From: Neoechinorhynchus agilis
Taxonomy: Eukaryota > Animalia > Acanthocephala
Direction of reading: 5' to 3'
Assembly (NCBI GenBank): GCA_051530055.1
Contig: CM121341.1
Coordinates: 1,674,001 to 1,738,000 of the forward strand
DNA length: 64,000 nt
Both the position numbers and the translations under genes were made by a program. Below the pieces are notes generated by a model that saw nothing but the letters and a program-made list of their open reading frames with translations, ran no database searches and was not told where the DNA came from. Shown here in pieces: positions 13,072-64,000 of this stretch (position 1 is the stretch's first letter; every line of letters begins with the position of its first letter).

Positions 13072-14079
13072 TTGATCACTATGTACTGTGAGCACAAAGT
13101 TATGAATTTTGATTTAGTAAGGAGCATCCTTAATGAAATTCTGATAGGCGAAGTGAGCATCGGTGAAATTCTTCAATTCGGATTGATAGATGTTCTTGGA
13201 GAGATGTTCGACAACAAAGATAATGCTCCACTCAACAAACTCTTAAACCAAGTTGGTATGAAGATCAAGGAGGCTTTTGATCAAAAACGATTTAAAGAAG
13301 GACGAGCGACGAAACCCAAATTAAATAAAACAAAAGAATTAGAACCCGAAATATCAGATACTGATTCTAATGATCGGAATTCTAATGCAATTTCGGACAA
13401 AAGAACAGAATCGCCGAAGAGTATCAATAGCGATAAAAAAGGAGAAATGGGACTTCGTAACGTCGAAAACGTTCACAGTCAACAGATTTCAGAATCCAAA
13501 CAATTGATGCCGCCTTCTCTTTTAACTAAGGAGATTAAATTATTAAAGTTTTTGTTGGATTCTCAATACGCAACGAAAATCTTCGAACTGGTGGACGATG
13601 TCCTTTCCGAGATTTCGGAATTAGCGATGACCGCGGATGAAATCAAAGATTCCGATCTCATAGCCATTCTCCATAACATGGCCAGCAACGAGGAAAACGA
13701 ACCGCTAATCGACATTATCGATGAAATCGGAAAAAAGATCGTGGGAATCTTTAATCGCCAACCTACAGAAATGTCCAATATTTCGACGGAAAATAAATCA
13801 GGATCACGATTGAAAGACAAATCACCGAATGAATCCACTTCAAAAAGAAAATCATCAAAGCCTTCAGTTGAAATGAACTTGAGTACCAAGGAACTCTGTA
13901 ATCGTTTAAAAAGCATCTTGGACGAGAAGTTCACTGTGCGGAACCACGCGATGCCAAAGCGGATACTCAGCGCGATGATTAAACGTGAAATAGCGTTGAG
14001 TGAAATTCGGAACTACAATTTGCATCCTAACTCAAGTTCGTGTGAATCCTTTAAATATTCGGCACAAAAGACTGATTGA
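13072..14079 (+). CDS. 335-aa segment of a multicopy helical-repeat protein (three TFIIS-N-like repeats with S/N/K-rich linkers); flanks 12480-14350 are disrupted
   Basis: Repeats SILNEILIGEVSIGEILQFGLIDVLGEM, DVLSEISELAMTADEIKDSDLIAILHNM and RILSAMIKREIALSEIRNYNL. A paralog lies at about 40075-41530. Confidence 0.5.
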   Translation: MITMYCEHKVMNFDLVRSILNEILIGEVSIGEILQFGLIDVLGEMFDNKDNAPLNKLLNQVGMKIKEAFDQKRFKEGRATKPKLNKTKELEPEISDTDSNDRNSNAISDKRTESPKSINSDKKGEMGLRNVENVHSQQISESKQLMPPSLLTKEIKLLKFLLDSQYATKIFELVDDVLSEISELAMTADEIKDSDLIAILHNMASNEENEPLIDIIDEIGKKIVGIFNRQPTEMSNISTENKSGSRLKDKSPNESTSKRKSSKPSVEMNLSTKELCNRLKSILDEKFTVRNHAMPKRILSAMIKREIALSEIRNYNLHPNSSSCESFKYSAQKTD

Positions 14080-25919: not shown

Positions 25920-27333
25920 TTACGAATGTGAGATTTCCTTGCTTTTGAAATCGACAGTTTCATTATCCGCATAACAGTCAAAAGCATTTTCTGGCACAGA
26001 TGCAATAGCTTCGGTTACAACACTGACGTCTTTGTACCTTTTTCTGAATCCCTTTATGGCTTTTTTGTCAACTAAATGGATTCCATCAAGTTGATTGCCT
26101 AGCGTAATCCAATTGTAATGTACATTATGGGGGCGTCCGAAAAGTTCAATTTTACGTGTTCCGGGGGATAATCTTTCTATGATTCCGTATATTTCATCTG
26201 GCTTCCTGCTGGTAGCCCGGACTTCGCTAACAATGACATCACAGTCGATTCCGGGGTAGAACTCGTCGAATTTCGAAGTCGCCAAATTCCCTTTGACTGC
26301 AACTAGACAATGTTCTTTTCCGTGGTTCAGCCAATGACCAGTCCGTCCAGTCCTTATAATTCTCTGGAGCTGGTTAGTCTTTACCCATGCAATTTCATCG
26401 ACTCGTGTATATCCCCATATCTTTAAACATTCTCGTCCAAGTTCCATTGCTCGACCAGTGACCCAAAGAAAGATATATCCTTCATCTTGCAAGCTCGGAA
26501 TATTCAATGCCCGCATTTCATCGTCGGCCATTGTTCCATAGGGCAGTTCCATATGAATGTCCCAGGGAGGATCAGCCATGATAATTGAGAACTTGCCAAG
26601 GCAACTAAGATCGAATTTGCGAATGTCACATTGTATCCATTGGGGTGGAATTCCTGCCACGGGTTTCTTTTTCCGCCGCATGGGTAAATCTTCAATCTGA
26701 TAATGAACGTATTTACACGATGCTACGTGGAAGCAGGTATTCAGAAAGGAACAGTGTCCGAGACTTGTATCGGTGTTGGGATTAACGATCCGATGAAAGT
26801 GAATCTTTGGACAGTCATTGGTACACTCTTCTCGAGTTTGGTTCCTGCAAAATTCATGGATCTGATCTATAAGTGGAAGAGAGAGACGAATAATTCAATC
26901 GATTAATCAATTCAAATACCGCTTGTCTTGGACTTCTTTACAGCCAAAAGTTGCTTAGCGGAAGGAGTTGTCAAAATCTTCACTATTTGCAACTCGGTAC
27001 TATTTCTTTTGTTTATCGACTTCCTTGACTTACTCATCAAATTATCAGACTTTTGAAGGTTTAGTTTGATCATCAAAAAGTTAACGTACCGATAAATCGT
27101 ATAGATTGCTGATCGCTTGACCAACAAAGTGCGGAATGCGAGATGATTGCCGATTTTTAAAGAATAGTTTAACCGGTCTACTACCAAACGTACCTATGTT
27201 TCATTTCGCAATGAAATAAAGCTTTTAAACTCTTACTTTTAAGAAGACTCCGTCTTTTACGACCATTTTCGCGAATTCTGACCTTAAAATCATCAAATTG
27301 ATCTTTAACTGCCAAAAGATCGTCCTGCAACAT
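25920..27333 (-). CDS. METTL3: m6A methyltransferase catalytic subunit (MT-A70 family); exons 27333-27237, 27193-27090, 27049-26920, 26866-25920; about 425 aa
   Basis: Catalytic IMADPPW, LWVTGRA and GRTGHWLNHGKEHCLV, two CCCH-type fingers (EFCRNQTREEC...CPKIHF; CSFLNTCFHVASCKYVHY) and an N-terminal leader helix. Three GT-AG introns of 43, 40 and 53 nt restore one continuous frame. Confidence 0.93.
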
Positions 27334-33430: not shown

Positions 33431-36400
33431 TTCGGACTACAACTCGATATTCTTAGAAATAACGCAAACGTCCCACTGATCTAAAAACGAAAGTACCTAA
33501 CTTACTTGCTTACTTGCTAAGTAGTTAAACATTGAGGCCTATTGGCAACAACAATAGTCCTTTTTGGGACACGAAATGCATCAATATGCACTTCCTATAC
33601 TGCACGGGAGATTATCTCCCTAAAGTGCCACTTGGATTTCTATTTTAATCAACAGCTTACGGACTACAACTCGATATTCAAAATAAAACGTCCAAAAACG
33701 ACGAGTTTAGTACCTAACTTACTTGCTAAGTAGTTAAACATTGAGGCCTATTGGCAACAACGTAGTGCTTTTTGGGACACGAAATGCATCAATATGCACT
33801 TCCTATACTGCACGGGAGATTATCTTATAAAGTTTATGCAGAATGCTAAAGTACCACTTGGATTTCAATTTTAATCAACAGCTTACGGACTACAACTCGA
33901 TATTCTTAGAAATAACGCAAACGTCCATTTTCATTGATCTATAGGAAACGACGAGTTTAGTACCTAACTTACTTGCTAAGTAGTTAAACATTGAGGCCTA
34001 TTGGCAACAACAATAGTGCTTTTTGGGACACGAAATGCATCAATATGCACTTCCTATACTGCACGGGAGATTATCTTATAAAGTTTATGCAGAATGCTAA
34101 AGTGCCACTTGGATTTCTATTTTAATCAACAGCTTACGGACTACAACTCGATATTCTTAGAAATAACGCAAACGTCCATTTTCATTGATCTATAGGAAAC
34201 GACGAGTTTAGTACCTAACTTACTTGCTAAGTAGTTAAACATTGAGGCCTATTGGCAACAACAATAGTGCTTTTTGGGACACGAAATGCATCAATATGCA
34301 CTTCCTATACTGCACGGGAGATTATCTTATAAAGTTTATGCAGAATGCTAAAGTGCCACTTGGCTTTCTATTTTAATCAACAGCTTACGGACTACAACTC
34401 GATATTCTTAGAAATAATGCAAACGTCCATTTTCATTGATCTATAGGAAACGACGAGTTTAGTACCTAACTTACTTGCTAAGTAGTTAAACATTGAGGCC
34501 TATTGGCAACAACAATTGTGCTTTTTGGGACACGAAATGCATCAATATGCACTTCCTATACTGCACGGGAGATTATCTTATAAAGTTTATGCAGAATGCT
34601 AAAGTGCCACTTGGCTTTCTATTTTAATCAACAGCTTACGGACTACAACTCGATATTCTTAGAAATAACGCAAACGTCCATTTTCATTGATCTATAGGAA
34701 ACGACGAGTTTAGTACCTTACTTACTTGCTAAGTAGTTAAACATTGAGGCCTATTGGCAACAACAATAGTGCTTTTTGGGACACGAAATGCATCAATATG
34801 CACTTCCTATACTGCACGGGAGATTATCTTATAAAGTTTATGCAGAATGCTAAAGTGCCACTTGGCTTTCTATTTTAATCAACAGCTTACGGACTACAAC
34901 TCGATATTCTTAGAAATAACGCAAACGTCCATTTTCATTGATCTATAGGAAACGACGAGTTTAGTACCTAACTTACTTGCTAAGTAGTTAAACATTAGAG
35001 GCCTATTGAATTGTGCTTTTTGTTACACGAAATGCATCAATATGCACTTCCTATACTGCACGGGAGATTATCTTATAAAGTTTATGCAGAATGCTAAAGG
35101 TGCCACTTGGATTTCTATTTTAATCAACAGCTTACGGACTACAACTCTATATTCTTAGAAATAACGCAAACGTCCATTTTCATTGATCCTATTGGCAACA
35201 ACAATTGTGCTTTTTGGGACACGAAATGCATCAATATGCACTTCCTATACTGCACGGGAGATTATCTTATAAAGTTTATGCAGAATGCTAAAGTGCCACT
35301 TGGATTTCTATTTTAATCAACAGCTTACGGACTACAACTCGATATTCTTAGAAATAACGCAAACGTCCATTTTCATTGATCTATAGGAAACGACGAGTTT
35401 AGTACCTTACTTACTTGCTAAGTAGTTAAACATTGAGGCCTATTGGCAACAACAATAGTGCTTTTTGGGACACGAAATGCATCAATATGCACTTCCTATA
35501 CTGCACGGGAGATTATCTTATAAAGTTTATGCAGAATGCTAAAGTGCACTTGGATTTCTATTTTAATCAACAGCTTACGGACTACAACTCGATATTCTTA
35601 GAAATAACGCAAACGTCCATTTTTATTGATCTATAGGAAACGACGAGTTTAGTACCTTACTTACTTGCTAAGTAGTTAAACATTTGACACGAAATGCATC
35701 AATATGCACTTCCTATACTGGCCTATTGGCAACAACAATAGTGCTTTTTTTTTGGACACGAAATGCATCAATATGCACTTCCTATACTGCACGGGAGATT
35801 ATCTTATAAAGTTTATGCAGAATGCTAAAGTGCCACTTGGATTTCTATTTTAATCAACAGCTTACGGACTACAACTCGATATTCTTAGAAATAATGCAAA
35901 CGTCCATTTTTATTGATCTATAGGAAACGACGAGTTTAGTACCTCTTACTTGCTAAGTAGTTAAACATTGAGGCCTATTGGCAACAACAATAGTGCTTTT
36001 TGGACACGAAATGCATCAATATGCACTTCCTATACTGCACGGGAGATTATCTTATAAAGTTTATGCAGGACGCTAAAGTACCACTTGGATTTCTATTTTA
36101 ATCACGGCTTACGGACTACAACTCGATATTCTTAGAAATAATGCAAACGTCCATTTTCATTGATCTATAGGAAACGACGAGTTTAGTACCTTACTTACTT
36201 GCTAAGTAGTTAAACATTGAGGCCTATTGGCAACAACAATAGTGCTTTTTGGGAAATGCATCAATATGAAACTGCATCAATATGCACCACTTCCTATACT
36301 GCACGGGAAACGATTATCTTATAAAGTTTATGCAGAATGCCTAAAGTGCCACTTGGGAGATTTCTATTTTTTAATCAACAGCTTACGGACTACAACTCGA

Positions 36401-37046
36401 TATTCTTAGAAATAATGCAAACGTCCATTTTTATTGATCTATAGGAAACGACGAGTTTAGTACCTTACTTACTTGCTAAGTAGTTAAAGTTAAACATTGA
36501 GCCTATAGGCAACAACAATAGTGCTTTTTGGGACACGAAATGCATCAATATGCACTTCCTATACTGCACGGGAGATTATCTTATAAAGTTTATGCAGAAT
36601 GCTAAAGTACCACTTGGATTTCTATTTTAATCAACAGCTTACGGACTACAACTCGATATTCTTAGAAATAATGCAAACGTCCATTTTCATTGATCTATAG
36701 GAAACGACGAGTTTAGTACCTTACTTACTTGCTAAGTAGTTAAACATTGAGGCCTATAGGCAACAACAATAGTGCTTTTTGGGACACGAAATGCATCAAT
36801 ATGCACTTCCTATACTGCACGGGAGATTATCTTATAAAGTTTATGCGAATGCTAAAGTACCACTTGGATTTCTATTTTAATCAACAACTTACGGACTACA
36901 ACTCTATATTCTTAGAAATAATGCAAACGTCCATTTTCATTGATCTATAGGAAACGACGAGTTTAGTACCTTACTTACTTGCTAAGTAGTTAAACATTGA
37001 GGCCTATAGGCAACAACAATAGTGCTTTTTGGGACACGAAATGCAT
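33430..37046 (+). repeat. Satellite with 251-bp unit, about 14 copies
   Basis: ACGAGTTTAG recurs at 33951, 34202, 34453 and 34704 (period 251). Units after about 35000 contain small indels. Confidence 0.97.
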
Positions 37047-37536: not shown

Positions 37537-39154
37537 ATGTCGGACAAAAGAACCCAATTGAGAATCGATCCAAGAACTGGGGAATACTACATTCCTAGTT
37601 ACCTACGAAGCGATGGAACTTGGACAGAAAGGATCGTCTTCCGACCGGCCAGAATTAACAATGAGCAACAGCGCTCAAATAATACTATAAGCTCAAATGC
37701 CACTATAAATGAAAATTTAAATCATGACTCGCAGCAAAGATCAAACCGAACCAGGAGTGTTCCAAGACCGAATCAAATTAACTATGCAAATAGAAATTCT
37801 CGTGGATCGGCACCTCTCGCTCGCTATCAACCTGATCGAAGCAAAAATGAACTTTCGAGGAGCAACAGTGCAACATACTCGGTATTTCGGTCCGGACACC
37901 AAAACAAAAATTCTGCAAATAGTGGCACAAATGTAGAAGGTGCAAATTATCAAAATCGTGCCAGAAGCGTACAGAGAGCTCTTCAATTAAATTCGCCTCG
38001 CGGAAATGGGCACAGAAGAGTCAACTTCAAGATTTCAAACTGCGACACTTAATAGTGCTATAAACACAGCGGGACACTTCAACGATTCAGGGAGCCAAAG
38101 GGCTCAATTCATCCAGAATCACCAAAATCCCACGCTACAACAACCACAAACAACAACCAATACTGCTATCGGCCAATCGATCAATTTCGGCGGCATTCAA
38201 AATGTTAACATGATTGGTGGCTTCCCATCCCAACGATTCACCCAATTACCTTTTGGACAAACAATACAGCCAATGCCTCAACTTATCGCCAATATGCAGG
38301 CATTATCTTTGGGGAATCAAGTTGGACAAATTTATCCATTAAATCAACCCAATGCGGCTTATGGATTAGGGTGCGGTGCAACCGGTGTTAATCAATTTCC
38401 TTCGGGATTTCTGCTGCCACATCAACTACAAAGGATCCCAAATACATTTAATGCACCCAATCACACCTTTGAGGCGGATAAACCAATTGATGAGGGAGAA
38501 GCTTTAAAAACCCAGCCGAAAAAAGATCATCTCTCGACTAAACTATATATCAACCGGAAAAACGGCGACCACGAGGAAAAGGTCCCAGTCATTGTGGAAT
38601 TGAGCATCCGCGCCGACGACCAAACAAACAGTGAACTTCGAAAATGTACAAAGGGCGGAATTAAGAATGCTTCTTTGCGGCCACGACATCGAGATAATTC
38701 AAATATTCCCAGTTATTTATGGACTTATCTGCGTCCAGCTCAAAGGGATTACATAAAAAAGAACAAAGTTGAAGGAGAGCCCGGCGATATAGAAGATATC
38801 GAAGACGTTGTCTTTGCGTTGGAACGTGAGGAAGAGATGCCGCCGATTCCGGAAAAATTTACTATTGTTATCCAAAAGCCCGAAAAGGAACAGAAAATTC
38901 CTGAATGGTTTACCTGCCACAAAGACGAACAATGGCAGGATATCGGCGATGAAACCTTTATGGAAGAGTTTCTAATGGGCGATGATGATATGGAGATCTT
39001 AAAATTGAATGCCGATACACTGAACACTAATAACAAAGACATGGCCTTTATTATGAAGTCATTGGCCAATAGTAAAGTGCATATTGAAGCTGTCACCATT
39101 GTAAATGATAAAGAAGATAAAGACAGTGAAAATAATTCAGATGAACAGAACTGA
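37537..39154 (+). pseudogene. Copy 1 of the 540-aa PYM-like/Q,N-rich ORF, split by a 2-nt deletion near 38015
   Basis: Near-identical to 46187-47809. GGGCACAGAAGAG here versus GGGCACGAAGAAGAG in copies 2 and 3. This could be a consensus error. Confidence 0.75.
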
Positions 39155-39629
39155 AGAAATACGGAGGCTAAATAAAGAAGAAACGATTAACTCGGCAGGA
39201 AAATAAACCAGGATGCTCAAAATGGGAATATCGAAATTTGCGAAAATGAAAAGTTTATAAAAAATGAAGAGTGATCGAACAAACTGTCGCTGCTTTTTGA
39301 TGTGCTTAAATAAAAAAATTAAAATCAAGTGTTTCAAATGGGCATTGATTTTCACTTGTCGCCTATTAAGCAAATAATTTTTAGGGGTATTTGTGGGCAC
39401 TTAAGATTTAAAAAATGATTTAATATTCTGGAGCGTTAAAAATTTATACAAGTTTGTTTTGTTTAGTATTTAGCGAAAAAATAGGAATATTTATTGAATA
39501 AAATGGATTCAAATAAATATTTACTTACAGATATTGGGAAGACTAAAAAGGTTAAAAATACATAGCTTCAAATTTAAAACATCTCGAGTGTCATTTCATA
39601 AGCAATTGTGATCACCGCATAAATCAAAG

Positions 39630-41530
39630 GATGAACGAATTTGTGTTTCGGAAAGCCTTTCATTTCCAAATTTTTTCAAAACATAATTATGTTAAATGGA
39701 ATTTAAAGAGAGAACAAGTCACATTTTCTTCACATCGACTATGTATATTTTTTGAAGCTTCTAGTCAGTTATTTTTTGAAACATATCATTGGCGAAATAA
39801 CAGCTATCAAAACTGTCAGGATTCATAGATATCCACCAGCAACTTTTTGTGAACCTGAAATCAAATTACAGAGTAACAAATCATTCCATGACAAAGAATG
39901 TTTTCAAGATATTCTAAATGAAAAAATGTCTTCAAATTAAAAAGAGTAAAGACAAAAACCTTTTACCTTGGTGCAACAAATAAGACATTGAACGGGATTA
40001 TTTTTAAAGTACTTTGAGTAATTGCTGAATGGCGAAGTATGGAAAAAGGTAAAAATACCGATGATAAATCTCATACATGTCCGGTATCCACTCAAAGTTT
40101 GATGTTGAGATTGAAGAGCAGTGTCCGATAGAAACGAAATCTAAATCCAGTTTTGAAGACGGGAGCTGTAAAGAAATTTCAAGAAAGAGGCTGTCATCAA
40201 CCATTCAAGGTGAAGAGAAAACAAAAATTCAGCGGACAGATTCAACACATCTCCGTCAAAGAATCTTGATGACTATGAACTCTGAGCACAAAATTGTGAA
40301 TTCTGATTTATTAAGGAGCATCGTTGATGAAATTCTGAAGGCGAAGTTAGCCTGAGTGAAATTCGTCAATCCGGATTGATAGATGTCCTTGGAGAGATGC
40401 TCGACAACAAGGATAATGCTCCACTCAAGAAACTCTTAATCCAAGTTGCTATGAAGGTCAAGGAGGCTTTCAATCAAAAACGATCTAAAGAAGGACGAGC
40501 GACCAAACCCAAATTAAATAAACCAAAAGAAGTAGAACCCGAAATATCAGATACTGATTCTAGTGATCGGGATTCTAACGCAATTTCGGACAAAGAGAAC
40601 AGAATCGCCGAAGAGAATCAATAGCGATGGAGAAATAGAAACGGGACTTCACAACGTCGAAAACGTTCACAGTCAACAGATTTCAGAATCCAAACAATTG
40701 ATGCCGCCTTCTCGTTTAACCAAGAAGATTAAATTACTAAAGTTTTTATTGGATTCGCAATACGCAACAAAAGCCTAGAACTGGTGGACGATGTCCTTTC
40801 CGAGATTTCAGAATTAGAGATGACTGTGGATGAAATCAAAGATTCCGATCTTATAACTATTCTCCATAAGATGGCCAGCAACGAGGAAAACGAACCGTTA
40901 ATCGACATTATCGATAAAATCGGAAAAAAGATCGGGAATCTATAATCGGCAACCTACGGAAATGTCCAATATTTCGATCGAAAATAAATCAGGGTCACAA
41001 TTGAAGGACAAATCACTCGAATGAATCGATTTCAAAAAAAAAATCAAAGCCTTCAATTGAAATGAACTTGAGCATCAAGGAACTCTGCGATCGTTTAAAA
41101 AGCATCTTGGACGAGAAGTTCACAGTTCGGAACCACGCGATGCTAAAGCGGATACTCAGCGCGATGATTAAACGTGAAATAGCGCTGAGTGAAATTCGGA
41201 ATAACAATTTGGTCAACATCCTAAGTCAAGTTCGTTCGAATCAATTAAATATTCGGCACAAAAGACTTTGTTGAAGAAAATAAATGACGGCTGATATGAA
41301 TTAAAAAATTTAAATCTCGAAAACGAATAGTGGACCTGAGAAATAAATCTGAAGGAAAAATGTTGGCGACGGAAACAACGGAGCAGCAGAAAACGAGAGC
41401 AGAATTCATGGGGAAATCTGAAGGAAAGACAAATATCAGATCTAACGAGGATAAAAACGAAGCTAAGACGGACATTTCTGATTTCACTTCCGAGGGTTCA
41501 ACCGGTTTCGAAACCGATTATTCGAACATC
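39630..41530 (+). pseudogene. Disrupted copy of the TFIIS-N-like helical-repeat gene
   Basis: Fragments 40077-40355, 40376-40624, 41062-41274 and 41330-41686 align with 12920-14345, with several stops and frameshifts. Confidence 0.7.
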
Positions 41531-42599
41531 AATAACAACTTTATTTATAAAAGTACGATCTATGTTCAACTGGAATTTTCGTTACCGATGGTTTTGAAAA
41601 TAACGTGGGGTGTACAGCATCGAGTTGGCGACCCAACATTTAATGTAGTTGAAATCCAACAGGGAAACCTAGAGCGCCCCTTTTAGACTCATAAAGTCTT
41701 GATTAAAATCGTTAATAATTTTCTCGCTGTACATTGCATTCTCCCCGCAATCTATCTTTCTCTCAAAGAATATGGCATTGCGCCCGCTGTTCCTGGATTT
41801 GAGTGAAATACACAGGCTGCAGGTCGCATTCGCTTATTTTTGTCTTAATATTATTTGATAGGATGTTTTGTTGTGGAAACATTAAAGGTAAGAAAGTTTC
41901 ACTTAACCACTTTCATCCCTTGAGGGTTTAGGTGGCTCTTTCAACTTTACTGCAAATTCACTTGCGAGAAACAATCCCTTCCTCAACGTTATCCCCTATC
42001 TGCCCCAACAACCCGCTTAGGAATCAACTCTTTTTTATTGACGAAATGCCCTTAAATTTTTCTATCATATGAATAAATCAGGCTCCAATATCTACTTTTT
42101 AGTTGTCCACCGTCACGCGTAGTTTCCTATTTTGCTCCATCAAATTGTAAATGTCTCTCCAAGTTTTCCAATTTTATATCATTATCCTCTTCCGCCTTCC
42201 ATGGTACGACTAACCGACTCTCTTTGAGTCCTGTTCGAGAAAGTGTACGGCTAATCCTGAAATTGACGAAGATGATCATTGGAACGCTGATTGATATAAA
42301 ATTCGTTTCAAAAATTCAATTAACATTACAGGTAATCGGAATCTTCTTGAATGATTCATTATTTAATTTCTAAACATACTCCACAATACCGTGTTTTTTT
42401 AACACATTTAGCGATTGTATCTCCAAAACTAGAATGAGACTTTACTAAATCTTCTTATGAATTTTAACTCTTCCCTGTTTCTGAGAGCCCATAAAAGATG
42501 CTCAACTTACAGGTCATGCTGAAATACGTTTGATTACTTAATCTAGCGATTCAGCCATCTTAATCCCGGTTACTCTTCCTTCCATACATACCGCGAGGT

Positions 42600-44115
42600 C
42601 CGCCCAGGAAGATGGTCTCAATCTACGAACGGCAATCTTTCACATCGGCGAAACCCCGATCGAGAATTCATCGCAATCCACTTTTCAGCTCCTGGCTCCT
42701 TTCCTCTTCATCTTGGTGATTGATTGGGTAATGAGATGGGCACTATCGGATGATGAAGATGGATTTCTTCGGTTGAGGAAAAGAGGTCGCAGGTATCCTG
42801 AGATACACGCCTCCTACATGGCATATGCCGACGACATCATGTTGATGTCCTCAACAGTCGAAGGAGCTCAACGCATGCTAAATAGACTGTGCGAGAGGGC
42901 GAATATGATTGGTATGACCATCAACTCGAAAAAGACGATTCCGCATGTCGCGCATACAGTCTCTGGCGAAGGGCCGAATGGCGTTGAGCAATTAAAACAG
43001 ATAGAGCGGTATGTCTATCTGGGAGCTGTCGTTCCTGAGGTGAGTGCGGATGTCAGCCGACGGAGAGCTATAGCTTGGAGAGCAATGGGGCAACTTAAGC
43101 CACTGTTTGACAGTGAGTCTTTGCCAGACGAACTCCGCTCGAAGCTGTTCAGGACTCTAATTGAGAGCATTCTCTACTACAATGAAGAGACCTGGACACT
43201 GTAACCAACGACGACGATGCAGTTGGACCAAAATCATTCATCTCTCTTACGTGCGGCGTTCAAGCTCAGATGGTCAGTAAAGTGACCAACAAAGCACTGT
43301 ATAAGAGCCGGAGTCCAACCGCCCAGTAAATATTTGCGCCACAGACGACTGCAGTTCACGGGCAATATAATTCGGTCCGAGGCATCTTGCCCACAGGTCG
43401 TGCAACAGTCCCTTTTCTAGAAGCCAACGACATTGTATCGTAAAGGCAAAGGGAACTGTCGTGCATACGATGACCTGATTTTAAGAGACGCGAATTGCCC
43501 GCATAACACGACTGCTGTCGTGTATTTTAGATCCCTTGCGGAGTCTAATTCTATTTGACGGGCTTATACCTACGGTGCAACGTAAATGGCATTAGAGAAT
43601 TCACCATTGCTGGTATCTATCGCCCTCCTGCCTCTCGTCCTGAGTCCTCTTTACGTAAACTGGTTTCCATGATGGAACTCATAAACTCTGCAAATTTACA
43701 CCATTTCTAAATTGCAGGGGACTTCAATGATCTATTTCTTCCTCTACCATTCTCCGAGTTGCGTCAACTTATTAATTTCCCAACTCGTCTTGACGCTCAC
43801 CTCGACAAAGTGTTAACAAATATCAACGCCTACTCATCCGCCCTTAAACTCCCTCCCCGCGCGAACTCTGATCTGATTCTTTTGCTTTTATCACTCCCTC
43901 AACCCCACCTCAGCGTTTAAAATCTCCCCGTTTACCCGTCTGGAATAAACGTGATCATCACACCGAAAATTTTATAAAATTGTTTAACTCTAACATCCAC
44001 ACGTCCCACTGACAAAACAAATGACCCTTCCTTGGCAACGTCCTCCCTAACCTTAATCATAGAAAATTCCCTAATCACGACAATTCCAAAGAAATTCAAT
44101 AGAATCTCCAACCGT
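42600..44115 (+). mobile_element. RTE-like RT 3' half (42600-43556) followed by an L2-like APE fragment
   Basis: LAPFLFILVIDWVM, AYADDIML, INSKKT, YVYLG and ETWTL. The APE fragment matches 33037-33430 and continues to about 44115. Confidence 0.85.
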
Positions 44116-45700
44116 GACGAGTTTAGTACCTAACTTGCTTGCCAAGTAGTTAAACATTGAGGCCTATAGGCAACAACAATAGTGCTTTTTGGGTCCCGAA
44201 ATGCATCAATTTGCACTTCCTATACTGCACGGGAGATTATCTTATAAAGTTTATGCAGAATGCCAAAGTGCCACTTGGATTTCTATTTTAATCACGGCTT
44301 GCGGACTACAACTCGATATTCTTAGAAATAATGCAAACATCCATTTTCATAGATCTATGGGAAACGATGAATTTAGTAGCTTACTTACTTGCTAATTAGT
44401 TTAACATTGGGGCCTAAAGGCAACAACAATAGTGCTTTTTGGGACACGAAATGCATCAATATGCGCCTCCTATACTGCACGGGAGATTATCTTACAAAGT
44501 TTATGCAGAATGCTAAAGTGCCACTTGGCTTTCTATTTTAATCAACAGCTTACGGACTACAACTCGACATTCTTAGAAATACCGCAAACGTCCATTTTTA
44601 TTAATCTATAGGAAACGACGAGTTTAGTACCTAACTTACTTGCTAAGTAGTTAAATATTGAGGCCTATTGGCAACAACAATAGTGCTTTTTTGGACACGA
44701 AATGCATCAATATGCACTTCCTATACTGCACGGGAGATTATCTTATAAAGTTTATGCAGGACGCTAAAGTACCACTTGGATTTCTATTTTAATCACGGCT
44801 TACGGACTACAACTCGATATTCTTAGAAATACCGCAAACGTCCATTTTTATTGATCTATAGGAAACGACGAGTTTAGTACCTTACTTACTTGATAAGTAG
44901 TTAAATATTGAGGCCTATTGGCAACAACAATAGTGCTTTTTGGGACCGAAATGCATCAATTTGCACTTCCTATACCACACGGGGTATCTTATAAAGTTTA
45001 TGCAGGACGCTAAAGTACCACTTAGTTCTATTTTAATCACGGCTTACGGACTACAACTCGATATTCTTAGAAATACCGCAAACGTCCATTTTTATTGATC
45101 TATAGGAAACGACGAGTTTAGTACCTTACTTACTTGATAAGTAGTAAAATGTTGAGGCCTATTGGCAACAACAATAGTGCTTTTTTGGACACGAAATGCA
45201 TCAATATGCACTTCCTATACTGCACGGGAGATTATCTTATGAAGTTTATGACGAATGGTAAAGTACCACTTGGATTTCTATTTTAATCAACAGCTTACGG
45301 ACTACAACTATATATTCTTAGAAATAATTCAAAGGTCCATTTTTATTGATCTATAGGAAACGACGAGTTTAGTACCTAACTTACTTGCTAAGTAGTTTAA
45401 CATTGAGGCCTATAGGCAACTACAATAGTGCTTTTTGGGACACGAAATTCATCAATTTGCACTTCCTATACTGCACGGGAAATTATCTTATAAAGTTTAT
45501 GCAGAATGCCAAAGTGCCACTTGGCTTTCTATTTTGATCAACAGCTTACGGACTACAACTTGATATTCTTAGAAATAATGCAAACATCCATTTTCATAGA
45601 TCTATGGGAAACGATGAATTTAGTAGCTTACTTACTTGCTAAGTAGTTAAACATTGAGGCATATAGGCAACAAAAATAGTGCTTTTTGGGACACGAAATG
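44116..45700 (+). repeat. 251-bp satellite, about 6 copies
   Basis: Same unit as 33430-37046. It ends at the same register (GGGACACGAAATGC) before the unique flank CAGGAAATTGG. Confidence 0.95.
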
Positions 45701-46186
45701 CCAGGAAATTGGTTTCGGAAGTAGCAACAAAAGCATGGGCGTTAACGAGTAATGCAAAGTAATTAAAAGTAATAGCTTCTTTGTTTAGTTCATTGAAGCC
45801 TTTGAAAATCAAGGATTTTTAAGTACTTTAATTATAATTAATCTGTATAATTAGTAATGCCTATCCGCACTATATCAATGTCGGCTTCTTGATCTCGCGA
45901 TTTGATTGGTGCACAAATTTACTGAGTGCAGTGAATCGCGCTGATTGGTTGCGCAACGTACTGTGGGAGCCTATTTATCATACCATTGAACCCGAATTGT
46001 ATACATCGCTAATATCTTTGGATATCGTACTAACGACCTAAACAGCTACGTTCTTAAACTCAACTTTCTACATCGGGTCATTACTATAATCTACTAATAT
46101 TTAACGATCTGATCGCTTCCTTAAACGAACATCTATTCAACGGCAACAAACGCGATCACCATTGCAAATCATTTTATCTTGCACAA

Positions 46187-47809
46187 ATGTCGGACAAAAG
46201 AACCCAATTGAGAATCGATCCAAGAACTGGGGAATACTACATTCCTAGTTACCTACGAAGCGATGGAACTTGGACAGAAAGGATCGTCTTCCGACCGGCC
46301 AGAATTAACAATGAGCAACAGCGCTCAAATAATACTATAAGCTCAAATGCCACTATAAATGAAAATTTAAATCATGACTCGCAGCAAAGATCAAACCGAA
46401 CCAGGAGTGTTCCAAGACCGAATCAAATTAACTATGCAAATAGAAATTCTCGTGGATCGGCACCTCTCGCTCGCTATCAACCTGATCGAAGCAAAAATGA
46501 ACTTTCGAGGAGCAACAGTGCAACATACTCGGTATTTCGGTCCGGACACCAAAACAAAAATTCTGCAAATAGTGGCACAAATGTAGAAGGTGCAAATTAT
46601 CAAAATCGTGCCAGAAGCGTACAGAGAGCTCTTCAATTAAATTCGCCTCGCGGAAATGGGCACGAAGAAGAGTCAACTTCAAGATTTCAAACTGCGACAC
46701 TTAATAGTGCTATAAACACAGCGGGACACTTCAACGATTCAGGGAGCCAAAGGGCTCAATTCATCCAGAATCACCAAAATCCCACGCTACAACAACCACA
46801 AACAACAACCAATACTGCTATCGGCCAATCGATCAATTTCGGCGGCATTCAAAATGTTAACATGATTGGTGGCTTCCCATCCCAACGATTCACCCAATTA
46901 CCTTTTGGACAAACAATACAGCCAATGCCTCAACTTATCGCCAATATGCAGGCATTATCTTTGGGGAATCAAGTTGGACAAATTTATCCATTAAATCAAC
47001 CCAATGCGGCTTATGGATTAGGGTGCGGTGCAACCGGTGTTAATCAATTTCCTTCGGGATTTCTGCTGCCACATCAACTACAAAGGATCCCAAATACATT
47101 TAATGCACCTAATCATACCTTTGAGGCGGATAAACCAATTGATGAGGGAGAAGCTTTAAAAACCCAGCCGAAAAAAGATCATCTTCTCTCGACTAAACTA
47201 TATATCAACCGGAAAAACGGCGACCACGAGGAAAAGGTCCCAGTCATTGTGGAATTGAGCATCCGCGCCGACGACCAAACAAACAGTGAACTTCGAAAAT
47301 GTACAAAGGGCGGAATTAAGAATGCTTCTTTGCGGCCACGACATCGAGATAATTCAAATATTCCCAGTTATTTATGGACTTATCTGCGTCCAGCTCAAAG
47401 GGATTACATAAAAAAGAACAAAGTTGAAGGAGAGCCCGGCGATATAGAAGATATCGAAGACGTTGTCTTTGCGTTGGAACGTGAGGAAGAGATGCCGCCG
47501 ATTCCGGAAAAATTTACTATTGTTATCCAAAAGCCCGAAAAGGAGCAGAAAATTCCTGAATGGTTTACCTGCCACAAAGACGAACAATGGCAGGATATCG
47601 GCGATGAAACTTTTATGGAAGAGTTTCTAATGGGCGATGATGATATGGAGATCTTAAAATTGAATGCCGATACACTGAACACTAATAACAAAGACATGGC
47701 CTTTATTATGAAGTCATTGGCCAATAGTAAAGTGCATATTGAAGCTGTCACCATTGTAAATGATAAAGAAGATAAAGACAGTGAAAATAATTCAGATGAA
47801 CAGAACTGA
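46187..47809 (+). CDS. Intact intronless 540-aa protein: PYM/Mago-binding-like N-terminus, R/S/N/Q-rich low-complexity middle, acidic C-terminus
   Basis: Open frame conserved across three copies. TGEYYIPSYLRSDGTW resembles the PYM motif (T/E)G(K/E)-x-I-x-(S/A)T-x-RPDGTW, but the downstream GYVPQEE motif is absent. Confidence 0.7.
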   Translation: MSDKRTQLRIDPRTGEYYIPSYLRSDGTWTERIVFRPARINNEQQRSNNTISSNATINENLNHDSQQRSNRTRSVPRPNQINYANRNSRGSAPLARYQPDRSKNELSRSNSATYSVFRSGHQNKNSANSGTNVEGANYQNRARSVQRALQLNSPRGNGHEEESTSRFQTATLNSAINTAGHFNDSGSQRAQFIQNHQNPTLQQPQTTTNTAIGQSINFGGIQNVNMIGGFPSQRFTQLPFGQTIQPMPQLIANMQALSLGNQVGQIYPLNQPNAAYGLGCGATGVNQFPSGFLLPHQLQRIPNTFNAPNHTFEADKPIDEGEALKTQPKKDHLLSTKLYINRKNGDHEEKVPVIVELSIRADDQTNSELRKCTKGGIKNASLRPRHRDNSNIPSYLWTYLRPAQRDYIKKNKVEGEPGDIEDIEDVVFALEREEEMPPIPEKFTIVIQKPEKEQKIPEWFTCHKDEQWQDIGDETFMEEFLMGDDDMEILKLNADTLNTNNKDMAFIMKSLANSKVHIEAVTIVNDKEDKDSENNSDEQN

Positions 47810-48559
47810 AGAAATACGGAGGCTAAATAAAGAAGAAACGATTAACTCGGCAGGAAAATAAACCAGGATGCTCAAAATGGGAATATCGAAATTTGCGAAA
47901 ATGAAAAGTTTATAAAAAATGAAGAGTGATCGAACAAGCTGTCACTGTTTTTTGATGTGCTTAAATAAAAAAATTAAAATCAAGTGTTTCAAATGGGCAT
48001 TGATTTTCACTTGTCGCCTATTAAGCAAATAATTTTTAGGGGTATTTGTAGGCACTTAAGATTTAAAAAATGATTTAATATTCTGGAGCGTTAAAAATTT
48101 ATACAAGTTTGTTTTGTTTAGTATTTAGCGAAAAAATAGGAATATTTATTGAATAAAATGGATTCAAATAAATATTTACTTACAGATATTGGGAAGACTA
48201 AAAAAGGTTAAAAATACATAGCTTCAAATTTAAAACATCTCGAGTGTCATTTCATAAGCAATTGTGATCACCGCATAAATCAAAGGATGAACGAATTTGT
48301 GTTTCGGAAAGCCTTTCATTTCCAAATTTTTTCAAAACATAATTATGTTAAATGGAATTTAAAGAGAGAACAAGTCACATTTTCTTCACATCGAGGATGT
48401 ATATTTTTTGAAGCTTCTAGTCAGTTATTTTTTGAAACATATCATTGGCGAAATAACAGCTATCAAAACTGTCAGGATTTCATAGTTTATCCACCAGCAA
48501 CTTTTTATAAGCCTGAAATCAAATTACAAAGTAACAAATCATTCTATGGCCAAGAATGT

Positions 48560-48732
48560 TTTCAAGATATTCTAAATGAAAAAATGCCTGAGTGAATTCC
48601 AATAAGCCGAATTTATTGACGCCTTGGATGAAATGTTCGTATGCGATAATGGCACTGTCGGTCTTGAAATAAAGAATCGAGTTGAAATCGAAATCAAAGA
48701 GAATATCCGCAGCTATATTAGAGAACATCGCA
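48560..48732 (+). pseudogene. Diverged fragment of the helical-repeat gene family
   Basis: AEFIDALDEMFVCDNGTVGLEIKNRVEIEIKENI aligns with FGLIDVLGEMFDNKDNAPLNKLLNQVGMKIKEAF of 13072-14079. Confidence 0.5.
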
Positions 48733-49320: not shown

Positions 49321-50590
49321 TCCGTTGTTACATTTTGAGACCAACTACCTTGGTTACTGATATTAAAACATCAATAAATTTAAGATCAAATTAACTTTTC
49401 CATATCTAATTTTGACGCTTAATTCACCTGCAATAACGGTTTGATGCAACCTGTAAATATTTGACACTTGGTTTTAGGATTGAAGTTCATAAAAGACACC
49501 TAAATTAAATCTGTGGTGCTCGAAAGTTGTTGCGAAATGATAATACATTTTGAGCATATCTAATGCGCTGATTTCAATGGTGTTATCTATATTTAGTGAA
49601 TCGTGCAAATTTGGTGATTTTTCACTCTTTGAATATTGACCGAATATGACTATGCGATTTCCGATGCGAATATTACAGCTGTAGTGTACGGAATCAGTTA
49701 CTTTAGTACATCTTAACGCGCAGATTCCAAATCTGTATTCAGATTTACAATAGCTATCATGGTTCTTGAGTTATTCGTTGCTACATTTTGAGACCAACTA
49801 CCCTGATTAATGATATTAAAACATCAATAAATTTAAGATCAAATTAAATTTTCTAGATCTACTTTTGACGTAGAATTCACCTGCAATAACGCTTTGATGC
49901 GGCTTGTTAAATTTTGACACTTAGTTTTTGGATTGAAGTTCATAAAAGACACCTGAACTAAATCTGTGGTGCTCGAAAGTTGTTACGAAATATTAAACCA
50001 TTTTGAGCATATCTAATGCGCTGATTTCAATGGTGTTATCTATATTTAATGAATCTTGCAAATTTAGTGATCTCTCACTCTTGTGAATTTCATTATTACT
50101 GTTGGGTGAAACGAGATTTGTTTTGTGCGGACACCCAGATGTTTTTTATTATGCAAATTTTCGGAGAGCAAAGTCTCCCTCTTCAGGCTTTTGGTCATTG
50201 TTAAAGTGTTTTATTCGCAAATTAAATCTGCGGTGCTCGAAAGTTGTTACGAAATGATAAAGCATTTTGAGCATATCTAATGCACTGATTTCAATGGTGT
50301 TATATATATTTATGAATCTTGCAAGTTTGGTGATCTTTCACGTTTGTGAAAATTGGTAAAATATAATAATGCGATTTCCGATGCGAATATTACAGCTGTT
50401 GTGTACTGAATCAGTTAGTTTGGTACATCTTAACGCGCTGATTCCAAATCTGTTTTCAGATTTGCAATAGCTATTATGGTTCTTGAGTTAACCGTTGTTA
50501 CATTTTGAGACCAACTGCGTTGATTAAAGATATTAAAACATCAATAAATTTAAGATCAAATTAACCTTTCTATATCTACTTTTGACGCTT
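49321..50590 (-). repeat. About 450-bp satellite in inverted orientation, with the same hammerhead-bearing insert (hammerhead at 50153-50188)
   Basis: TGAGACCAAC recurs at 49336, 49789 and 50506. The insert is the reverse complement of 5180-5320. Confidence 0.9.
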
Positions 50591-52372
50591 CATGTATACA
50601 AGACAGGACGCCCACTAAAATTTCAGAGATAAAAAAGGCCATCTCAACTTTATCAAATGGTTCGGGTCACGGGCTTGACGGACTAAGGCCTCAGCACCTA
50701 AAGGGCATGATGTCCTTTTCAACTTTTGAAGCAGCTCTCTCTAGAAAGCGCGCTTTCTCGAATAGTCGACCGCCTGACTGGAGAGGACCTGAACCCCGTT
50801 GCAAAGGACCTATTTTTCGGAGCCTCATTGTGTGCACTCACAAAAAAAAGAAGGTGGGATCCGTCCCATCGCCGTATCTTCGACGATACGCCGACTCGCA
50901 GGAAAAATTCTCTGCAAACGTATTACAGAGAAAACCGGACAGCAACTTCGTCCAGTCCAACTGGGCTGCTGCGCATCCTGCGGGGCGGAAGCTATTGTCC
51001 ACTCGCTCCGAAACTTAGCTACGAGAAGCAAGGAGCCTTGCGTGATTCTTAAGTGCGATTTTTGGAACGTCTTTAACTCTCTCAATAGAGAAAGCATGTT
51101 CTGCGCAATTGGGGATCACGCACCAGAAGCCTTCCAGTATTTTCTCAATGCCTACGGGACGGCGACTCCTTTGCTTTTCGAATACCACCTCATTTGGTCC
51201 GAAATAGGAGTGCAGCAAGGAGATCCCCTCGGTCCAATCGCATTCTCCCTAACAGTAAATCCAATAGCGCATTCTCTCCATTCCAGCTTCAACGCTTGGT
51301 ACTTGGATGACGCTACGCTCGGAGGTGATCCCTCCGTTGTAATGCGCGATTTGGAGACGCTGATTAGCGAGACCTCGAAGATGGGCATTGAGCTTAATGC
51401 TGGAAAATGTGAGCTCGTTGTACTGAATATTGGAGACGCCGCCAAAGTCAAAGAACTAATGGCTGGGTTCGAGGCCGTAGCTCCAGGCCTGAAACTCGTG
51501 ACTCGGGAACAACTCAGCCTCCTGGGCAGTTGCGTCTTCGATTCAAATGTGGAAGATGAGATCGGCCATATCATACCGAAACTTTCGTTGCTGTGCGATA
51601 GGGTGTGCGCTCTCTCGGCGCATGAAGCTTTGTTTCTCATAAAGAACGCGCTCTTCATCCCCAAATTATTGTACAAGGTTCGCACAGCAACATTTTTCAA
51701 ACACAAAAAAGGATTGGCAAAGCTGGACGATAAGCTGAGGGCATGCCTCGAGCGTATTTTAAATGTCCAGCTCTCAGATGAGGCGTGGCGACAAGCTTCT
51801 TTGCCTGTGTCATCTGGGGGATTGGGAATTCGGGCACTAGTGGACCTTGCTTTGCCGGCCTTTCTTGGATCGTTTGAGGGGAGCCTTCCAGTATCGAAGA
51901 AAACTTTGAAGGAAAAGTTCTGTCTTGACCGGGATTTCGTGGTGGCGGTTGAGGAATGGTGCCAGCAGACAGGCGCTAACCATGTTCCCGTTAATGGCCT
52001 CAGGCAGTCGATCTGAGACAGACCTCTTGTTGCGAGAGCTCACAGCTCTCTACTTTCCGGTTCTCGCGATGGGGTCGTCCGAGCTAGACTGTTGGCAGTT
52101 TCAGCACGAGAATCTGGGGCGTGGTTAGAGGCTGTTCCTCTGGCATCAGTGGGAACTCTTTTTACTGATAAGGTGGTCTCGTCTGCAGAAGGTCAGCAGG
52201 AAGGTTCTCACGCCATTCTGAAATCAATAACGCAATTTCTCGGGCGTTGAGAACGGCGAACTTCCCGGACATCCTGGAACCCGCCCACCTTTGTCGACTA
52301 GACGAGCGTGATGGCGACGGTCGAGGAAGGACAAAAGCTGGAATTCAGCGGGAGGTGGTGAGTGTGTTAATT
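50591..52372 (+). mobile_element. Second CRE-clade copy (inverted duplicate of 2190-4380) with most of the RLE deleted
   Basis: RT ORF 50799-52016. The satellite junction is the same as at 4380. The sequence jumps from GTCGACTAGACG directly to AGCGTGATGGCGACG of the 3' end. Confidence 0.9.
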
Positions 52373-62648: not shown

Positions 62649-64000
62649 TCAGTTCTGTTCATCTGAATTATTTTCACTGTCTTTATCTTCTTTATCATTT
62701 ACAATGGTGACAGCTTCAATATGCACTTTACTATTGGCCAATGACTTCATAATAAAGGCCATGTCTTTGTTATTAGTGTTCAGTGTATCGGCATTCAATT
62801 TTAAGATCTCCATATCATCATCGCCCATTAGAAACTCTTCCATAAAAGTTTCATCGCCGATATCCTGCCATTGTTCGTCTTTGTGGCAGGTAAACCATTC
62901 AGGAATTTTCTGCTCCTTTTCGGGCTTTTGGATAACAATAGTAAATTTTTCCGGAATCGGCGGCATCTCTTCCTCACGTTCCAACGCAAAGACAACGTCT
63001 TCGATATCTTCTATATCGCCGGGCTCTCCTTCAACTTTGTTCTTTTTTATGTAATCCCTTTGAGCTGGACGCAGATAAGTCCATAAATAACTGGGAATAT
63101 TTGAATTATCTCGATGTCGTGGCCGCAAAGAAGCATTCTTAATTCCGCCCTTTGTACATTTTCGAAGTTCACTGTTTGTTTGGTCGTCGGCGCGGATGCT
63201 CAATTCCACAATGACTGGGACCTTTTCCTCGTGGTCGCCGTTTTTCCGGTTGATATATAGTTTAGTCGAGAGAAGATGATCTTTTTTCGGCTGGGTTTTT
63301 AAAGCTTCTCCCTCATCAATTGGTTTATCCGCCTCAAAGGTATGATTAGGTGCATTAAATGTATTTGGGATCCTTTGTAGTTGATGTGGCAGCAGAAATC
63401 CCGAAGGAAATTGATTAACACCGGTTGCACCGCACCCTAATCCATAAGCCGCATTGGGTTGATTTAATGGATAAATTTGTCCAACTTGATTCCCCAAAGA
63501 TAATGCCTGCATATTGGCGATAAGTTGAGGCATTGGCTGTATTGTTTGTCCAAAAGGTAATTGGGTGAATCGTTGGGATGGGAAGCCACCAATCATGTTA
63601 ACATTTTGAATGCCGCCGAAATTGATCGATTGGCCGATAGCAGTATTGGTTGTTGTTTGTGGTTGTTGTAGCGTGGGATTTTGGTGATTCTGGATGAATT
63701 GAGCCCTTTGGCTCCCTGAATCGTTGAAGTGTCCCGCTGTGTTTATAGCACTATTAAGTGTCGCAGTTTGAAATCTTGAAGTTGACTCTTCTTCGTGCCC
63801 ATTTCCGCGAGGCGAATTTAATTGAAGAGCTCTCTGTACGCTTCTGGCACGATTTTGATAATTTGCACCTTCTACATTTGTGCCACTATTTGCAGAATTT
63901 TTGTTTTGGTGTCCGGACCGAAATACCGAGTATGTTGCACTGTTGCTCCTCGAAAGTTCATTTTTGCTTCGATCAGGTTGATAGCGAGCGAGAGGTGCCG
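62649..64000 (-). CDS. Copy 3 of the 540-aa PYM-like ORF, 5' end beyond the window edge
   Basis: Reverse complement of about 46458-47809, sharing the intact-frame alleles of copy 2. The 3' flank 61975-62648 also matches. Confidence 0.8.
   Translation of the reverse strand, partial: APLARYQPDRSKNELSRSNSATYSVFRSGHQNKNSANSGTNVEGANYQNRARSVQRALQLNSPRGNGHEEESTSRFQTATLNSAINTAGHFNDSGSQRAQFIQNHQNPTLQQPQTTTNTAIGQSINFGGIQNVNMIGGFPSQRFTQLPFGQTIQPMPQLIANMQALSLGNQVGQIYPLNQPNAAYGLGCGATGVNQFPSGFLLPHQLQRIPNTFNAPNHTFEADKPIDEGEALKTQPKKDHLLSTKLYINRKNGDHEEKVPVIVELSIRADDQTNSELRKCTKGGIKNASLRPRHRDNSNIPSYLWTYLRPAQRDYIKKNKVEGEPGDIEDIEDVVFALEREEEMPPIPEKFTIVIQKPEKEQKIPEWFTCHKDEQWQDIGDETFMEEFLMGDDDMEILKLNADTLNTNNKDMAFIMKSLANSKVHIEAVTIVNDKEDKDSENNSDEQN

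Follow-up and report, generated by a model that had tools for sequence, protein, structure and literature searches.

The question raised by this locus is whether a long, single-exon open reading frame (ORF) of the acanthocephalan Neoechinorhynchus agilis is a relative of PYM that has been put to a new use, or a gene family of its own. The ORF lies at 46187..47809 (+) of a 64,000-nt stretch of the genome (assembly GCA_051530055.1, contig CM121341.1, positions 1,674,001 to 1,738,000), and "the window" means this whole stretch. The original prediction had read it as a multicopy, intronless gene, whose product joins a PYM-like motif for binding the exon-junction complex (EJC) to a prion-like scaffold. 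The reading we prefer, which we think probable but not secure, is that of a single-exon gene family which is restricted to N. agilis, has been amplified segmentally, is under purifying selection and is not a demonstrable PYM.

The ORF runs from ATG to TGA over 540 codons, and its 540-aa product opens with MSDKRTQLRIDPRTGEYYIPSYLRSDGTWTERIVFRPAR and carries the N-terminal signature TGEYYIPSYLRSDGTW. It is an intact coding sequence (CDS) and the second of three copies in the window. Compared with copy 2, copy 1 (37537..39154, +) has 4 substitutions and has lost 3 bp at one site and 2 bp in a GAA run; the 2-bp deletion causes a frameshift after residue ~160. Because of these small changes copy 1 is split into ORFs of 171 and 382 aa, the second of which is matched exactly by the public model P0003, and copy 1 is either a pseudogene or an assembly error. 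Copy 3 (62649..64000, −) is inverted, is represented from codon 91 onward and is cut by the end of the window. It is 100% identical to copy 2 across the 1352 shared nt, so a very recent duplication or gene conversion is suggested by the comparison. Further copies were found on two small unplaced contigs of 49 kb and 19 kb, which carry four members of 540 aa. These four and a 496-aa paralogue (P0002) are each one uninterrupted frame, so both the multicopy and the intronless description held. The public 509-aa gene model for the window copies (P0004) splices out an in-frame, GT..AG-bounded segment of 93 nt (46532..46624, +, from the annotation comparison), whereas the other copies are annotated as single exons.

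The family comprises at least 11 gene models or fragments, and all of them belong to N. agilis. A search of 5.8 billion clustered proteins found no member outside this species, and when HMMER was run exhaustively with the family profile on 1.84 billion representatives, fragments of the N. agilis family were all that came back. In the searches run, no Pfam family or PDB sequence matched, including when the family profile was used against the PDB. The 496-aa paralogue lies on the same 19.4-Mb scaffold as the window (CM121341.1) and is 56-64% identical to the other members, and three decayed fragments (locus tags 000179, 000267 and 000330) lie on this scaffold too. The young copies are 96-100% identical to one another, while the old paralogue has about 75% nucleotide identity to them in the CDS and no similarity in the flanks. 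Nei-Gojobori analysis of copy 2 against this paralogue (L001) gave dS (synonymous divergence) 0.75, dN (nonsynonymous divergence) 0.20 and dN/dS 0.27. The N-terminal 45 codons had a dN/dS of 0.21 and the C-terminal region one of 0.20, with 0.31 in the low-complexity middle. That the old paralogue has kept the CDS but not the flanks, at a dN/dS of 0.27, points to selection on the protein itself.

These values bear directly on the idea that the ORFs are non-functional, being chance-open or recently dead frames inside a young repeat. With 96-100% identity, the frames of the young copies could still be open simply because these copies are young; copy 1 has a frameshift, three more models are fragments, and the young pair L002a and L002b has a dN/dS of 0.8, a value that is based on 16 differences. 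But the paralogue is still open at a dS of 0.75 with flanks diverged beyond recognition, an open frame of 540 codons at about 40% GC is not expected by chance, and the copies have BRAKER models that drew on RNA-seq hints. We therefore regard dead frames as very improbable, and by the sequence comparisons the genes are real members of a protein-coding family under purifying selection. The N. agilis genome is 46.2 Mb with 13,655 BRAKER models built with RNA-seq hints (PMC12690905). Neither that genome and transcriptome paper and one of its supplements, where these genes, PYM, Mago and Y14 are not mentioned, nor the companion gene-loss paper, where EJC and nonsense-mediated decay (NMD) factors are not mentioned, discusses the subject. 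The models are already public as "hypothetical proteins", and the best filing for them is an uncharacterised, amplified orphan family.

The resemblance to PYM is confined to a short N-terminal module (residues 14-38, TGEYYIPSYLRSDGTWTERIVFRPA; 46226..46300, +), which is like the first half of the Mago-binding domain; a small beta structure is predicted for it. The pattern that it has in common with PYM is TG-x-Y-I-x-S-x-x-R-x-D-G-T-W. Pfam PF09282, the check put forward with the original prediction, gave no match at E<=10, whether the query was the full protein or just the first 49 aa of the window copy or of P0002; the same domain is present in 180 of the 180 PYMs listed with a Pfam domain. 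A search for a canonical PYM of N. agilis with a human query gave tetrapod proteins throughout among the best 120 of 1057 matches, and a plant query gave plant-type PYM domains only (88 matches). One of the PYM-type records, P0188, is a 65-aa fragment of plant type that NCBI lists under Staphylococcus aureus; this is almost certainly contamination. A Mago-bind hidden Markov model (HMM) was built from 54 distinct plant, tetrapod and fly domains and run with all filters off. The window protein scored 2.2 bits (per-sequence E 0.01) and the paralogue 0.2 bits; 2.2 bits was also reached by 52 of 5000 shuffles and by 1 of 140 decoy ORFs, and animal and plant PYMs recognise each other at 24-50 bits. 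A plant-only PYM HMM returned nothing for the window protein.

At the residue level, 4 of the 17 positions conserved in PYM are retained in the window copy (3/11 invariant and 1/6 near-invariant), and the paralogue has 2/11 and 1/6. The RK that follows DGTW in PYM is TE or TA in the family. None of the three frames contains the second half of the Mago-binding domain (RK…GYVPQEEVP.Y), which is invariant across PYMs from plants to humans, so the missing GYVPQEE that had been noted at the outset was confirmed. A frameshift relic was considered and rejected: frame +2 after DGTW reads RKDRLPTGQN and a stop in the young copies, scoring −2.1 bits and no better than the real frame, and STNSLPTGQK and a stop in the paralogue. 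The paralogue also moves the invariant Arg (QQLRDGTW), with a lower profile-profile probability of 38% in hhalign, and the best-conserved residues of the family itself, IDPRTGEYY and RIVFRPAR, differ from those of PYM.

Searches from the protein outwards gave the same picture. A phmmer search of the PDB with the N-terminal 49 aa returned a rhamnose-glucuronate lyase (YLRkADGTWT) and FXR1 and not the PYM chain 1rk8_C, which the N-terminus of human PYM finds at 8e-17. Weak matches of the PYM query to the QRxDGxW repeats of squalene cyclases show that the short motif recurs in unrelated folds. PYM was not retrieved by the PDB sequence or profile searches, nor from the 5.8-billion-protein and exhaustive 1.84-billion-protein sets. 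BLASTP against primate PYM showed nothing beyond residues 12-29, and no likeness to PYM was seen outside residues 12-38. The protein is 540 aa long against about 200-280 aa for PYM, and the small size and C-terminal similarity looked for in a PYM were not found. With the whole protein as hhalign query the P value was 3.3e-4, which means that about 4-5 chance matches would be expected in a PYM scan of 13,655 genes; the P value of 1.1e-5 for the family N-terminus corresponds to an E of about 0.3 against the ~24.7k Pfam families. Because PF09282, the combined HMM, the PDB phmmer search and the 1.84-billion-protein search all fail, the protein is not a demonstrable member of PYM, and by the defining test of that family it is not one.

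Published work on the interface also speaks against membership. PYM orthologues are conserved solely in a 27-aa domain, and deleting 12 residues abolishes Mago-Y14 binding (PMC6351623); on the other side of the interface, the single charge reversal E117R in MAGOH abolishes PYM1 binding (PMC11952570). In the N. agilis protein the module would copy the first two strands of the Mago-binding domain (YIxSxxRxDGTW). Since the basic RK/RR residues and the GYVPQEEVP.Y half are absent, canonical PYM-type capping of Mago-Y14 appears unlikely, and a PYM-like role is possible.

Several results weigh against the orphan-family reading, and they concern mostly the same module. Profile-profile comparison by hhalign of the family N-terminus with a PYM profile made of plant, tetrapod and fly PYMs gave a probability of 81.5% with a P of 1.1e-5 over 25 columns. 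The observed score was 27.9, and the 1200 column permutations reached at most 20.9; extrapolating their tail gives about 1e-5. All of this signal comes from the first half of that domain (P 9e-7), with P 0.38 for the second half. The original prediction was to be refuted by a lack of Mago-bind profile similarity; the curated PF09282 fails, and the profile-profile comparison gives a sub-threshold similarity. An animal-only PYM HMM reached 10.1 bits over YIPSYLRSDGTWT (E 3e-5 per sequence), a score matched by 1 of 40,000 shuffles. BLASTP found 10 of 18 identities with primate PYM (residues 12-29 against 16-33) and 7 of 12 with fly PYM. The module is N-terminal (residues 14-38 of 540), as it is in PYM, whose domains begin at about residue 10-30, and its dN/dS is 0.21. 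The AlphaFold model of residues 1-60 alone had a pLDDT (predicted local distance difference test) of about 90 for residues 11-30. When this model was compared by Foldseek with 350,542 PDB chains, rank 1 was the PYM chain 1rk8_C at a non-significant E of 0.9 (probability 0.82, template-modelling score 0.67 on a 33-residue target, 24% identity). The Foldseek score includes amino-acid similarity and so is not independent of the sequence, and structure 1RK8 is in the AlphaFold training data. As a control we used a WW domain, which the start and the final W of the module ('IDPRTGEYYI...W') also recall, with WW sequences that served for the control only. It was rejected, with an hhalign score of 12.8, P 0.02 and probability 2.4%, and no Pfam WW match was found, so the similarity to PYM is specific. 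Thus the resemblance appears stronger than typical chance and goes beyond a four-letter coincidence. In addition, a co-evolved Mago-Y14 in a fast-evolving parasite could tolerate altered residues, the lost basic residues are read as contact residues on an indirect basis (MAGOH E117R and background on the 1RK8 interface), and the scaffold or adaptor function proposed below is one that we infer from composition only.

These points favour the view that the family descends from or mimics PYM, with the module docking on Mago-Y14 and the disordered scaffold adding a role in EJC turnover, NMD or ribonucleoprotein granules. But the view has to face the failed PF09282 test, the lost second half and RK, the shifted Arg of the paralogue and the lack of significance at the scale of a proteome or of Pfam; the comparison with PYM was also chosen post hoc. 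On balance we hold it to be unlikely. For its parts, an evolutionary relationship between the module and the Mago-binding domain is a tentative proposal that we lean against, and actual binding of Mago-Y14 is decidedly doubtful. A PYM remodelled in a parasite lineage with massive gene loss, in which half a Mago-binding domain acts on a co-evolved Mago-Y14 and is joined to a basic and Q/N-rich disordered scaffold and a new acidic domain, and in which the amplified proteins sequester or re-route EJCs or replace canonical PYM, seems more doubtful again. So of the PYM-like motif in the original prediction the partial match is real (by BLASTP and hhalign) and membership in the family is not borne out (no PF09282, 4/17 positions), which leaves a repurposed PYM paralogue or mimic somewhere between unlikely and tentative, with conjectural condensate and EJC/NMD functions.

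The amplified, taxon-restricted family that we prefer is carried by a genomic unit with a regular structure. From one ORF start to the next the distance is 8650 bp in the window (37537 to 46187) and 8421 bp in locus L002 on contig JBMGUZ010000015 (10001 to 18422), so that the spacing is regular at 8.4-8.65 kb with an ORF in each unit, as in a macrosatellite-type tandem array. The unit common to the young copies is at least 4.2 kb and includes a satellite of 250-251 bp directly 5' of each young copy, in the window and on the two other contigs, with 6-14 units and 76-97% matches within arrays. Repeat analysis placed this satellite at 44116..45701 for copy 2 (251 bp, 6.4 units) and at 33433..37046 for copy 1. 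Between satellite and ATG is a non-repetitive segment of 485 bp common to the young copies (45702..46186, +), presumed from its position to be the promoter and 5' untranslated region. The 3' flank common to the copies (47810..48586, +) has AATAAA hexamers at about 47826, 47858 and 47963, and the end of its homology is ragged, with neither a poly(A) tail nor a terminal repeat. Besides the satellite, the young copies have in common at least 0.5 kb on the 5' side and about 0.8 kb on the 3' side. Retroelement fragments break up the array; the one at 49.3-52.1 kb seems to have split the amplicon immediately 3' of copy 2.

A second ORF of 335 aa, rich in S, N, K and E, lies about 1.2-1.4 kb downstream of the 540-aa gene in 3 of the 5 copies examined. 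In the window the neighbour of copy 1 is decayed (40340..41267, +), and the same linkage is found in L002 (13002-13983) and L003 (13000-14004). No Pfam domain was found in it. The best window copy of this ORF (13072..14079, +) has no copy of the 540-aa gene before it. It stands behind a different satellite of 118 bp, the array at 11016-12420, which lies upstream of it and has 12 units with 90% matches (also scored at periods of 235 and 471 bp).

Given this setting, the ORF might be a passenger or accessory gene of a selfish repeat, that is, a transposable element or a satellite-associated amplicon, and its copy number would then follow the spread of the repeat rather than a function for the host. 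The window is rich in retroelement fragments (RVT_1, integrase, aspartyl protease), the same 251-bp satellite is found 5' of every young copy, and several copies are broken, all of which would suit such a passenger. However, no transposase, reverse transcriptase, integrase or gag domain was found in the protein by Pfam; the unit ends are ragged and differ from copy to copy, with no poly(A), long terminal repeat (LTR) or terminal inverted repeat (TIR) seen; the old paralogue keeps the CDS without the flanks at a dN/dS of 0.27; and the copies are clustered on one scaffold and two small contigs rather than dispersed. We thus consider the selfish-repeat explanation improbable. A discrete transposon or retrocopy as the mode of amplification was rejected in the absence of poly(A), LTR, TIR and common termini, and the young copies keep related flanks and satellite, with no poly(A) at the boundary, which a processed retrocopy would not. 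The amplification is that of a segmental, macrosatellite-like amplicon, and neither a discrete mobile element nor a processed retrocopy.

Outside the N-terminal module the protein has three further regions. The original prediction had seen about 280 aa of low complexity rich in R, S, N, Q and G, and we found 272 aa of this kind, residues 41-312 (46307..47122, +; pLDDT <35), with N 15%, Q 12%, S 10%, G 8% and R 7%, a Q+N content of 26% and an isoelectric point (pI) of 11. It divides into a basic, N/S/R-rich stretch (residues 41-165) and an almost uncharged one (residues 166-312; K+R 3%, D+E 1%), which is 27% Q+N with G, P and F and is predicted to be disordered. The charged, acidic C-terminus was likewise found as described: residues 313-540 (47123..47806, +) have 22% D+E, a net charge of −18 and a pI of 4.7, and this is the best conserved part between the paralogues. 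No known domain was found in it by Pfam or in the PDB; Cmr2_N came up for the C-terminal 226 aa at E 0.16 with 12.5 bits against a cut-off of 25, and was taken as noise. AlphaFold gave the whole protein a mean pLDDT of 29.8, and a whole-protein fold search was therefore skipped.

Two smaller sequence observations were made in these regions. One is an internal echo between IPSYL...RPAR in residues 19-39 (46241-46303) and IPSYLWTYLRPAQR in residues 392-404 (47360-47398), whose skeleton IPS.L...RPA is also in the paralogue. It could be left over from a duplication within the protein, or it could have arisen by chance, as 540 aa would contain an exact 5-mer repeat with p ~0.05. The other is PQLIANMQALSL in residues 249-259 (46932-46964), a short predicted helix inside the disordered region that is conserved in the paralogue. 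It fits the L-x3-M-x2-L-x-L spacing of a leucine-rich nuclear export signal, which is a pattern observation only. Export by Crm1 has been reported for fly PYM.

The four parts, namely a beta module of about 30 residues, the basic N/S/R-rich disorder, the uncharged Q/N/G/P/F-rich stretch and the acidic region of about 230 aa, suggest how such a protein might act. It would be a lineage-specific scaffold or adaptor, with the N-terminal hairpin bound to a partner protein, the basic disorder in contact with nucleic acid and the uncharged Q/N-rich stretch promoting self-association. The acidic C-terminal region may serve as a second, lineage-specific interaction or regulatory domain. New tandem or segmental duplicates would sustain the copy number; the identity of copies 2 and 3 speaks for a recent duplication or gene conversion, and copy 1 and the fragments for continuing decay. 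In this picture the anatomy, the selection and the amplification stand on data, and the function is inferred.

The interest of the family depends on the module, because the partial PYM-like module is its single unusual feature. If the module binds Mago-Y14, this would be the first case found of the single-copy, near-invariant PYM interface being halved, fused to a scaffold and amplified; our literature search found no paper describing a partial Mago-binding domain outside PYM. It would then be a natural experiment on which half of the domain suffices for EJC recognition, and a handle on mRNA surveillance in acanthocephalans, a group in which a large part of the conserved regulators has been lost (PMC12690905, PMC12256650). 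Without such binding, the locus would still serve as a clear case of a taxon-restricted gene, young and under selection, within a tandem array linked to a satellite; this is useful for annotating the genome but unsurprising, as genes of this kind are familiar. In both cases it is cautionary, since a short motif picked by eye fails the curated profile and yet survives profile-profile and fold comparison.

The rest of the window contains mainly retroelement remains. Two RVT_1 reverse-transcriptase elements in opposite orientation (2885-4753 and 50222-52091) are 96.7% identical, with the RVT_1 domain at 50799-52016 and its relative at 2983-3879. An LTR-type integrase ORF lies at 19254-20135 and a gag-aspartyl-protease ORF at 22511-23296. 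A full MT-A70 domain (E 1.5e-60) was found in the ORF at 25920-26681 (−), between the repeat blocks. This ORF would be an N6-methyladenosine (m6A)-methyltransferase-like gene or exon, and by its domain match it is the only one of the genes seen here that is clearly conserved and of host type. Neither the Rfam scan of the window nor the tRNA scan gave a match.

Several known systems can be set beside this family. With the WW domain, rejected above, it has in common a DPxTGxxYY-like start and, by prediction, a small three-stranded beta module. As in PYM (also called WIBG; 1RK8 chain C), the partner of Y14 and Mago, an N-terminal module is followed by a long disordered region; unlike PYM, it lacks a PF09282 match and the invariant RK and GYVPQEEVP.Y half, is multicopy, is 540 aa long and does not retrieve PYM in reciprocal searches. 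The classic criterion for prion-like proteins is at least 30 Q/N per 80 residues. The prion-like scaffold that had been proposed agrees approximately with residues 166-312, which are uncharged, Q/N/G/P/F-rich and predicted to be disordered like Q/N-rich prion-like proteins, but the densest 80-residue window (starting at residue 194) has 26 Q/N, below that level, and residues 41-165 are basic and R/S/N-rich. The closest parallel for the organisation of the locus is found in intronless genes within macrosatellite arrays, such as DUX4 in D4Z4 and USP17 in RS447. There is no sequence relationship to these, and the N. agilis unit differs in having a 251-bp satellite block and a second ORF in 3 of 5 copies, and its array in having retroelement interruptions and an inverted copy. 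Like DUX4/D4Z4 and USP17/RS447, however, it has a single-exon ORF in every kilobase-scale unit, high identity between copies, and a mixture of intact and broken copies.

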